The notes under the pieces were generated by a model. The model made no database searches, was not told the origin of the DNA, and saw only the letters and a list, made by a program, of their open reading frames with translations. Of a stretch of 64,000 bases of DNA, positions 559-62,376 are shown piece by piece. Where the stretch lies: the NCBI RefSeq assembly GCF_006345805.1, contig NC_042997.1:161758001-161822000 (forward strand), written 5' to 3'. This DNA comes from Octopus sinensis. Lineage: Eukaryota. The position numbers and the translations under genes were made by a program. How positions within the stretch are numbered: the first letter of the stretch is position 1; each line of letters begins with the position of its first letter.

Positions 559-588
559 CAAATGTGGATTCAACTTCAGATGGTTTTT
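559..588 (-). CDS. micro-exon A* (E)KPSEVESTF
   Basis: CAG|30 nt|GTGAGT, phase 1-1. Confidence 0.85.

Positions 589-62376: not shown

Follow-up and report, generated by a model that had tools for sequence, protein, structure and literature searches.

A micro-exon array in Octopus sinensis as a probable PEVK-like spacer of an obscurin/UNC-89-family giant gene

The micro-exon genes (MEGs) of Schistosoma contain short symmetric exons in series, the skipping of which keeps the reading frame, with roughly a dozen micro-exons per gene, and their products are small, secreted and made with a signal peptide. The PEVK region of vertebrate titin, a charged and disordered spring, is encoded by more than 100 short repetitive exons that are block-duplicated, heavily alternatively spliced and often missed by annotation tools (PMC6469411). 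The PEVK region of Drosophila Sallimus is an alternatively spliced spring, the length of which sets sarcomere dimensions, and it is carried by a few very large exons, exon 32 alone encoding about 1,700 residues (PMC12063666). In members of the UNC-89/obscurin family, a disordered interkinase region of ~650 residues behaves like an entropic spring, and sarcomere order depends on it (bioRxiv 10.1101/2020.04.03.023374; PMC12812942). Described here is a 64,000-nt stretch of Octopus sinensis DNA (the window; contig NC_042997.1, C1 in the following, nt 161,758,001 – 161,822,000), the minus strand of which carries a long series of micro-exons, almost all of 30 nt. The window is an internal segment of a larger array, which has no fewer than 205 micro-exons and of which it covers about one quarter.

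As a whole, this internal micro-exon array is probably a PEVK-like spacer in an octopod giant gene of the obscurin/UNC-89 family, with a putative role as spring or tether. Read in this way, the octopus array is the short-exon spring region of a giant muscle protein, a known kind of structure in a new form. Like titin PEVK, it consists of block-duplicated, tandem short frame-compatible exons between immunoglobulin (Ig) blocks of a giant muscle protein, and its peptide passes the rule of more than 40% P+E+V+K. Most titin PEVK exons are ~75-84 nt in length, whereas those of the octopus are 30 nt (10 residues); in addition, the octopus array is without PPAK, is rich in E, T, V and S with little Pro or Lys, and has a host that carries SH3-DH-PH and not the fn3 super-repeats of titin. 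With the interkinase spring it shares the protein family, but that spring lies between two C-terminal kinases, while the octopus array is placed upstream of SH3-DH-PH, within the Ig tandem of the N-terminal part, has about three times its length, is cut into more than 200 micro-exons and shows no sequence similarity to it. The fly exon layout is the opposite of the octopus array, and since the Sallimus spring sits in very large exons, fine chopping is not a general invertebrate habit. Unlike the Schistosoma MEGs, the octopus locus has at least 205 micro-exons that form one repeat region in a giant Ig/SH3/RhoGEF gene.

Both strands of the window were scanned with a strict splice pattern that is blind to the encoded peptide (YAG-N30-GTRAG with a pyrimidine-rich upstream 20-mer), N being varied from 12 to 60, and the chance expectation was taken from 200 Markov simulations preserving the dinucleotide content of the window. 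The minus strand gave 46 matches at N=30 and 0-9 at each other length, while the plus strand gave a single match at N=30; the simulated expectation at this length was 0.73 +/- 0.83, with a maximum of 4. Chance splice-like sites were ruled out by the simulation together with the length spectrum. With relaxed donors and a family check, the full list for the minus strand between nt 559 and 62376 comprises 57 exons of 30 nt, two of 24 nt and two copies of 29 nt (Table 1), all bordered by AG/GT. Segments 588-559, 1511-1482 and 2652-2623 are examples in which a 30-mer is preceded by YAG and followed by GTRAGT. The intact exons sum to 1,758 nt of coding sequence, or 2.8% of the span. Apart from translated microsatellite, the window has no stop-to-stop open reading frame (ORF) of 110 residues or more, so the array is invisible to an ORF track, and Rfam and tRNA scans of the window found nothing. 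A preliminary description of this DNA had reported these counts and coordinates, ~1.8 kb of coding sequence making up ~3% of the span, a 60-residue peptide, symmetric frame-preserving exons with canonical splice sites, and their invisibility among ORFs, all of which were reproduced. Its picture of a self-contained hidden gene of about 60 exons did not hold, as at least 205 exons spread over ~205 kb lie in frame between the Ig exons of a gene of at least 640 kb.

The introns throughout the window are full of (AT)n/(TA)n tracts of up to ~380 bp, and the long intron between exons 26509 and 21378 contains a 1,045-bp tandem duplication (nt 22772-24896; 95.8% identity). The two 29-nt copies (56629-56657 and 39529-39557) are 1-nt deletions of exon types C and A (see below), respectively, inside young units of 97-99% identity, and represent either fresh disabling mutations or assembly errors.

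To follow the array beyond the window, 100 kb of DNA was read on each side (264 kb in total), and genome-wide searches covered the 2.72-Gb assembly of 13,516 contigs. Window-relative coordinates count the first letter of the window as position 1 and are negative below it. The 264 kb holds 211 exons of 30 nt, five of 27 nt and four of 24 nt, all of phase 1-1; the strict scan returned 199-206 matches at N=30 on the minus strand against 26 or fewer at any other length, and no excess on the plus strand. Extending over ~205 kb of the minus strand (window-relative +152,040 to -51,966), the main array has 205 exons and a median intron of 510 nt; its coding sequence amounts to 6,111 nt, or ~2,037 residues. 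Upstream of it is a different super-repeat, which includes five 27-nt exons. When the type-F exon with its splice sites was searched genome-wide, all 23 matches (up to 3 mismatches) fell on the minus strand at C1:161.708-161.886 Mb. Because every one of these 23 matches lies in one array, it is not a dispersed repeat, and a dispersed repeat or transposon was thereby ruled out.

Between 34 and 61 kb of the window, self-megablast resolved 5-6 units of 3.5-5.7 kb that are 94-99% identical, introns included, and are therefore recent tandem duplications, while older units are ~80% identical or less. The array would be a structure that expands and contracts through tandem duplication of multi-exon units.

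Each 30-nt exon is made up of 2 nt, nine codons and 1 nt (phase 1-1), and is open in one frame only. Of the 220 exons in the 264 kb, 213 have G as their last letter and 216 open with AA, AT or AG, so that every junction rebuilds GAA or GAG (Glu) or GAT (Asp). With phase 1-1 throughout and Glu or Asp at the junctions, any subset of exons can be joined without a break in frame.

Coding status and selection were assessed on exons that had not been picked by peptide, both in the octopus and in orthologous DNA from Argonauta hians (locus L025, 109 kb, GCA_054771915.1), which was reached through two database proteins described below. For exons set by splice sites alone, a stop interrupts phase 1 in two of 206 octopus exons, compared with 86 and 129 in the other two frames, and in none of 87 Argonauta exons; across the sets of the two species, off-frame stops occur in 52-129 exons per frame. 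Within an exon type, divergence between paralogous copies is 0.19-0.37 at the third codon position, as against 0.02-0.16 at the first and second, third positions diverging 2-3 times faster than the others. Exon length is constant among paralogues, while the intron sequence on either side (-120..-25 and +10..+120) shows differences of 40-52% and gaps in 20-32% of the columns.

The Argonauta locus gave 85 strict matches at N=30, no other length exceeding 7; its modules and phase are those of the octopus. When the two species were compared by blastn, similarity extended over 82% of micro-exon bases, 22-65% of bases in the adjoining upstream 45 nt, and ~0% of those intron positions that lie over 100 nt from an exon; conservation in the orthologous DNA amounts to the exons plus ~40 nt on either side. 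A block that corresponds 1:1 (window 21.7-17.9 kb; L025 25.7-30.4 kb) yields exactly five collinear high-scoring segment pairs of 54-93 nt, each centred on one of five exons. Nearest-neighbour interspecies pairs have a ratio of nonsynonymous to synonymous substitution (dN/dS) of 0.34 in the proposed frame, and of 1.41 and 1.14 in the other two. The micro-exons are conserved in a second octopod family, and by these comparisons of DNA the segments are almost certainly genuine coding exons under purifying selection. Selection on length, phase and peptide in the face of intron decay had already been proposed for the window, and both the paralogue and the Argonauta comparisons, including the dN/dS value, bear it out. 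Exons diverging as fast as their introns had been named in advance as one outcome that would speak against the micro-exon reading; the opposite was found, interspecies alignment being confined to exons and their close flanks.

The two Argonauta proteins, Ahia01_000031300 (P0001) and Ahia01_000031400 (P0003), are 'hypothetical proteins' matched by a composite of 2,319 residues built from micro-exons and Ig exons, and the next matches are Ig tandems of obscurin, titin and unc-89 at 22-38% identity. Both models contain long runs of 10-residue modules spliced together and joined to Ig on both sides, and are 52-67% identical to the octopus conceptual product. As they are only 1.6 kb apart on one strand, they represent one gene split in two. 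Both are unnamed and partial, and some modules are misjoined (e.g. VLLRYQ and VLSRCH insertions). The earlier suspicion that the DNA came from a cephalopod agrees with these closest public proteins being from an octopod, and the expectation that gene predictors would miss or fragment such a gene was borne out in part: the Argonauta models are split and partial, but many modules are present in them, and spliced together.

In the protein database, a 1,992-residue array peptide retrieved the two Argonauta models alone, and a 587-residue peptide from the window had no match when compared with proteins of 323-1,027 residues. A HMMER search of 1.84 billion representatives with the Argonauta micro-exon peptide, in which the query's own cluster did not come up among the matches, gave six weak matches, and the two inspected were unrelated repetitive proteins. 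No retrocopy with joined exons, which would be indirect proof of splicing, was found. In the literature, nothing was found on such a micro-exon array in cephalopods or in obscurin, nor on a PEVK region in cephalopod titin or obscurin.

Six exon types of 10 residues each, A to F, make up a 60-residue super-repeat, for which the consensus of types D-F is (E)QPSEVDATV, (E)IITETESRI and (E)KPSEIESTV. One of three donors, GTGAGT, GTAAGC and GTAAGT, follows 186 of the 220 exons. Types A, C and E have a common acceptor context, TTAATTtCACAG (e.g. acceptors 62377-62388, 60518-60529 and 51350-61), together with donor GTAAGC, and types B, D and F have a common T-rich acceptor ending in ttcAG and donor GTGAGT. 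Both class-specific patterns recur in Argonauta, and could be splicing-control elements or mere shared ancestry.

Two further features of the donors were observed. Young type-A exons (59036-59065, 53992-54021, 48659-48688, 45147-45176 and 30256-30285) have the weak donor GTATGC instead of GTAAGC or GTAAGT, and may be skipped more often. The type-B donor, as at 62029-62058 and 57362-57391, reads GTGAGTGAGA, with a second GT 4 nt downstream, which accounts for a small peak at N=34 in the length scan; use of this second GT would break the frame.

The otherwise uniform array is interrupted by an aromatic four-exon block, present twice in the window (21378-18177 and 2652-559), again at window-relative ~131 kb and ~69 kb, and at L025 26074-30075 in Argonauta. 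It contains the 24-nt exon DRPYAETI and an exon EKxSxVEST[FY]. One such block is conserved 1:1 in Argonauta, with the exons alone alignable. The block may be a binding island inside the spring.

The array is flanked on both sides, on the same strand, by 267-270-nt exons of phase 1-1 that each encode one I-set Ig domain (Pfam E ~1e-18). Downstream, at window-relative -58 to -100 kb (C1:161.658-161.700 Mb), a 30-nt linker exon, (E)LPAVIEPDT, recurs in alternation with at least 21 Ig exons. The Argonauta counterpart of this linker, ELTVVEQPDT (L025 76-98 kb), has at least 11 copies in the DNA and one in P0001, so that linkers were missed by annotation or are alternatively spliced. More than 60 I-set exons occupy the minus strand of C1:161.383-162.013 Mb, and the named database matches to the Ig tandem are mainly obscurin or obscurin-like. 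On the same strand, and only 8 kb below where the tandem Ig exons end, is an SH3 exon (C1:161,634,446-649); it was the sole strong genome-wide match to a vertebrate obscurin SH3-DH-PH query (56% identity over SH3), and its best PDB match is the obscurin SH3 domain (1v1c, E=5.7e-19; next 2e-5). Also on the minus strand are a RhoGEF DH exon (C1:161,626,505-687; 43 bits) and, in order, the two halves of a SOS1/NGEF-type PH domain (C1:161,619,387-560, then 161,616,839-997). Ig exons continue past the PH exons, and a kinase (Pkinase) exon is found on the same strand (C1:161,372,005-463), 11 kb below the last Ig exon.

The order from 5' to 3' is Ig tandem, micro-exon array, Ig/linker tandem, SH3, DH, PH, Ig and kinase, and the host gene, the ends of which were mapped by family searches only, spans at least 640 kb. 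The SH3-DH-PH cassette comes downstream of the Ig tandems, an arrangement shared with vertebrate obscurin; UNC-89 of nematode and fly has the cassette at its N-terminus. Vertebrate obscurin (obscurin A) has tandem Ig and Fn3 domains, followed by SH3, IQ, RhoGEF and PH (PMC12812942). Because inventory and order, the micro-exon array aside, match vertebrate obscurin, the host was assigned to the obscurin/UNC-89 family, and on these domain matches the micro-exons are likely to belong to an obscurin-family gene. In the intron beside the SH3 exon (L026 1930-2678, minus strand), frames resembling a mariner/Tc1-type transposase relic were noticed, judged by eye.

A different host would be implied if the array were the I-band spring of a titin/sallimus-type gene, with the SH3-DH-PH and kinase exons assigned to another gene next to it. 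Among PDB structures, titin I65-I70 (3b43) is closest to the flanking Ig exon, ahead of MyBP-C and other titin and obscurin Ig domains, the composition passes the PEVK criterion, the exon layout resembles that of titin PEVK (PMC6469411), and continuity of the gene was traced on DNA. This explanation is nevertheless unlikely, given the short distance from the last tandem Ig exon to the SH3 exon, the resumption of Ig exons beyond PH, the predominance of obscurin among the named matches, and the agreement with obscurin A in the succession of tandem Ig, SH3, RhoGEF and PH (PMC12812942). Furthermore, none of the genome's best 150 fn3 exons is at the locus, these 150 belonging almost entirely to another giant gene (C2:91.68-91.86 Mb). 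Titin/sallimus was dropped as the host gene after the SH3, DH and PH exons had been found at the locus and a separate Ig+fn3 giant on C2. This second giant gene (C2:91.40-91.95 Mb, plus strand), in which I-set and fn3 exons are numerous and open frames reach 1,405 residues, is probably the genome's titin/twitchin-type gene.

Of the residues in the product of the array, 24% are Glu, 16% Thr, 14% Val and 9% Ser; acidic residues make up 27% and basic ones 11%. Its P+E+V+K content is 0.44-0.54 per 250-residue window, above the 0.40 cut-off of the PEVK criterion (P+E+V+K >40% per 250 aa; PMC12063666), and in charge and hydropathy it plots on the unfolded side of the dividing line. For 194 residues of the Argonauta array, AlphaFold2 gave no confident fold, with a predicted local distance difference test (pLDDT) value of 36, which is weak evidence and says little more than that the segment is not plainly globular. 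Placed between Ig blocks of a giant protein associated with the sarcomere, the spacer would act as a long tether or entropic spring, with a contour length of ~0.7 um at ~0.35 nm per residue, and exon skipping would shorten it in 10-residue steps with nothing else altered, which is how the PEVK exons of titin are used. By analogy with the springs described above, the chances that the array is a spring with splicing-tuned length are about even.

A more specific proposal is an octopod obscurin with a ~2,000-residue spring drawn from more than 200 consecutive 30-nt exons, its length dialled by skipping, and with ordered splicing that would need a dedicated exon-definition mechanism. This is put forward tentatively, at somewhat less than even chances. 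The class-specific acceptor motif TTAATTTCACAG, which is conserved across species, may be part of such a mechanism. If this proposal is true, no other gene described so far would, to our knowledge, have as long a run of micro-exons.

The same exon organization might instead serve as a diversity cassette, in which one or few exons or units are chosen per transcript (as in Dscam) and isoforms are of similar length. Many near-identical alternative units stand in tandem, all interchangeable in frame, and the class-specific splice-site consensus has been kept between species, as such a cassette would have it. However, copies of a type are nearly identical in peptide, so that little diversity would come from choosing among them; the Argonauta models string dozens of modules together, the symmetric phase permits joint inclusion, and selection keeps more than 200 copies intact. 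This alternative is improbable, marginally more so than a titin-type host.

The preliminary description had likened the locus to a MEG, the array being the body of a gene for small secreted proteins varied by exon skipping, and had looked to the flanks for a signal peptide and the gene's own ends. The formal hallmark of MEGs is present, as the exons are short, symmetric, frame-preserving and in many near-identical copies, and the likeness stands to this extent; nothing indicates a small secreted protein, and the titin PEVK array is the closer parallel. What bounds the array in frame on both sides is I-set Ig exons, with no signal-peptide exon adjoining it, and the whole is contained in a same-strand run of Ig, SH3, DH, PH and kinase exons of at least 640 kb. 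The full product would be ~2,000 residues of acidic repeat and not a small variable peptide, and no sequence relative was found outside octopods, the two Argonauta models being the only ones once weak matches to unrelated repetitive proteins are set aside. A gene of the MEG type is thus very improbable. Just as improbable is a non-functional tandem repeat or decaying relic, not expressed and with splice-like edges inherited by duplication: the 94-99% identity of the young units makes many copies just recent duplicates, two copies are frameshifted and the case for expression has been made on DNA, but old copies and a second octopod family keep length, phase, open frame and synonymous excess while the introns are unalignable.

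Several points weigh against the array being an expressed PEVK-like spacer of an obscurin-family gene. GINGER, the pipeline behind the Argonauta models, combines evidence from ab initio prediction, RNA-seq and homology (PMC12682272), and any transcript support that the models lend to the micro-exons is suggestive and no proof. Inclusion of the micro-exons in mRNA is likewise argued from conservation and predicted models, and the presence of array, SH3-DH-PH and kinase on one transcript would follow only from strand, order and spacing, to which compatible phases and the neighbouring Argonauta models can be added. The kinase exon, at best a candidate obscurin kinase, ranked 12th when sturgeon obscurin kinase was the query. 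Two exons of the window are frameshifted, and assembly could have altered the number of copies among the near-identical young units. In the product, many residues are beta-branched and AlphaFold2 drew weak strands, while a low single-sequence pLDDT does not prove disorder; the PPAK motif (Pfam PF02818) was absent from the two super-repeats searched (E <= 0.01). Spring function and splicing-tuned length are drawn by analogy only.

Table 1. Micro-exons and duplicated units of the window (nt positions in the window; residues in parentheses are encoded across the preceding junction)
Feature	Position	Strand	Splice sites (acceptor/donor) and remarks
Type A 30-nt micro-exon, (E)VVTEKVTRT	62347..62376	-	AG/GTAAGT, phase 1-1
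Type B 30-nt micro-exon, (E)TRSEVESTV	62029..62058	-	AG/GTGAGT
Type C 30-nt micro-exon, (D)IVTQEELPR	61510..61539	-	AG/GTAAGC
Type D 30-nt micro-exon, (E)QPTEVDATV	60816..60845	-	AG/GTAAGT
Type E 30-nt micro-exon, (E)IIQETESRI	60488..60517	-	AG/GTAAGC
Type F 30-nt micro-exon, (E)KPSEIESTV	60157..60186	-	AG/GTGAGT
Type A 30-nt micro-exon, (E)IVTEKVTRT	59036..59065	-	AG/GTATGC (weak donor)
Type B 30-nt micro-exon, (E)TRSEVESTA	57362..57391	-	AG/GTGAGT
Type C 29-nt copy, 1-nt deletion, frame broken	56629..56657	-	compared with 51320-51349
Type D 30-nt micro-exon, (E)QPTEVDATV	55795..55824	-	AG/GTAAGT
Type E 30-nt micro-exon, (E)IIQETESRI	55449..55478	-	AG/GTAAGC
Type F 30-nt micro-exon, (E)KPSEIESTV	55116..55145	-	AG/GTGAGT
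Type A 30-nt micro-exon, (E)IVTEKVTRT	53992..54021	-	AG/GTATGC
Type B 30-nt micro-exon, (E)TRSEVESTA	52055..52084	-	AG/GTGAGT
Type C 30-nt micro-exon, (D)IVTQEERPR	51320..51349	-	AG/GTGAGC
Type D 30-nt micro-exon, (E)QPTEVDATI	50489..50518	-	AG/GTAAGT
Type E 30-nt micro-exon, (E)IIQETESRI	50142..50171	-	AG/GTAAGC
Type F 30-nt micro-exon, (E)KPSEIESTV	49809..49838	-	AG/GTGAGT
Type A 30-nt micro-exon, (E)IVTEKVTRT	48659..48688	-	AG/GTATGC
Type D 30-nt micro-exon, (E)QPTEVDATV	46947..46976	-	AG/GTAAGT
Type E 30-nt micro-exon, (E)IIQETESRI	46600..46629	-	AG/GTAAGC
Type F 30-nt micro-exon, (E)KPSEIESTV	46268..46297	-	AG/GTGAGT
Type A 30-nt micro-exon, (E)IVTEKVTRT	45147..45176	-	AG/GTATGC
Type B 30-nt micro-exon, (E)TRSEVESTA	42894..42923	-	AG/GTGAGT
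Type C 30-nt micro-exon, (D)IVTQEERPR	42159..42188	-	AG/GTGAGC
Type D 30-nt micro-exon, (E)QPTEVDATV	41328..41357	-	AG/GTAAGT
Type E 30-nt micro-exon, (E)IIQETESRI	40981..41010	-	AG/GTAAGC
Type F 30-nt micro-exon, (E)KPSEIESTV	40648..40677	-	AG/GTGAGT
Type A 29-nt copy, 1-nt deletion (A4->A3 homopolymer), frame broken	39529..39557	-	compared with 45147-45176
Type B 30-nt micro-exon, (E)TRSEVESTA	37208..37237	-	AG/GTGAGT
Type C 30-nt micro-exon, (D)IVTQEERPR	36476..36505	-	AG/GTGAGC
Type D 30-nt micro-exon, (E)QPTEVDATV	35647..35676	-	AG/GTAAGT
Type E 30-nt micro-exon, (E)IIQETESRI	35300..35329	-	AG/GTAAGC
Type F 30-nt micro-exon, (E)KPSEIESTV	34968..34997	-	AG/GTGAGT
Type A 30-nt micro-exon, (E)IVTEKVTRT	30256..30285	-	AG/GTATGC
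Type B 30-nt micro-exon, (E)TRSEVESTV	28589..28618	-	AG/GTGAGT
Type C 30-nt micro-exon, (D)IVTQEERPR	27841..27870	-	AG/GTGAGC
Type D 30-nt micro-exon, (E)QPSGVEATV	27428..27457	-	AG/GTAAGT
Type E 30-nt micro-exon, (E)IITETESRI	26877..26906	-	AG/GTAAGC
Type F 30-nt micro-exon, (E)KPSEVESTV	26509..26538	-	AG/GTGAGT
Type L 30-nt micro-exon, (E)HLTEPEYWI, aromatic island	21349..21378	-	AG/GTAAGC; orthologous exon Argonauta L025 26074
Type J 24-nt micro-exon, (D)RPHAETI	20998..21021	-	AG/GTGAGT; conserved in Argonauta
Type K 30-nt micro-exon, (E)TISETIVRG	20640..20669	-	AG/GTAAGC; orthologous exon L025 28227
30-nt micro-exon, (E)KLSDVESTY	19613..19642	-	AG/GTGAGT; orthologous exon L025 29172
30-nt micro-exon, (E)KLFAVKSTV	18177..18206	-	AG/GTGAGT; orthologous exon L025 30045 (ENLFAVRSTT)
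30-nt micro-exon, (A)KLSEVESTV	14612..14641	-	AG/GTGAGT
Type D 30-nt micro-exon, (E)QPSEVETTV	13495..13524	-	AG/GTAAGT
Type E 30-nt micro-exon, (E)SIKETESRI	13149..13178	-	AG/GTAAGC
Type F 30-nt micro-exon, (E)KPSEIESTV	12849..12878	-	AG/GTGAGT
Type A 30-nt micro-exon, (E)IVTEKVTRT	10565..10594	-	AG/GTAATG
Type B 30-nt micro-exon, (E)TRSEVESSV	10041..10070	-	AG/GTGAGT
Type C 30-nt micro-exon, (D)IVTQDERPI	9470..9499	-	AG/GTGAGC
Type D 30-nt micro-exon, (E)QPSEAETTV	9028..9057	-	AG/GTGAGT
Type E 30-nt micro-exon, (E)IVTETESRI	8290..8319	-	AG/GTAAGC
Type F 30-nt micro-exon, (E)KPSEVETTV	7903..7932	-	AG/GTGAGT
Type A 30-nt micro-exon, (E)VVTEKVTRT	4894..4923	-	AG/GTAAGA
Type B 30-nt micro-exon, (E)TRPEVETSV	4565..4594	-	AG/GTGAGT
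Type L 30-nt micro-exon, (E)PLTEPEYWI, aromatic island	2623..2652	-	AG/GTAAGC
Type J 24-nt micro-exon, (D)RPYAETI	1808..1831	-	AG/GTGAGT
Type K 30-nt micro-exon, (E)IIKETIIRG	1482..1511	-	AG/GTAAGC
Type F 30-nt micro-exon, (E)KPSEVESTF	559..588	-	AG/GTGAGT
5-6 young tandem units, 3.5-5.7 kb each, ABCDEF with introns	34160..60915	-	94-99% mutual identity, self-megablast
Whole window, internal part of one array	1..64000	-	micro-exons continue at least 94 kb below and 88 kb above

For annotation, the locus is a warning that cephalopod gene sets split or miss genes of this kind, the ~205 kb of array containing no reportable ORF. If the array is expressed as read here, it would offer a natural test bed for the way in which the spliceosome defines and orders hundreds of 30-nt exons, and would show another giant muscle protein, the second, arriving by convergence at a 'short-exon spring' design. 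The usual picture of obscurin is a rather stiff rod of Ig domains in which the interkinase spring is short, and muscles of the octopus type work over very large length ranges; on the same condition, obscurin in these animals would gain an extensible segment of titin size.

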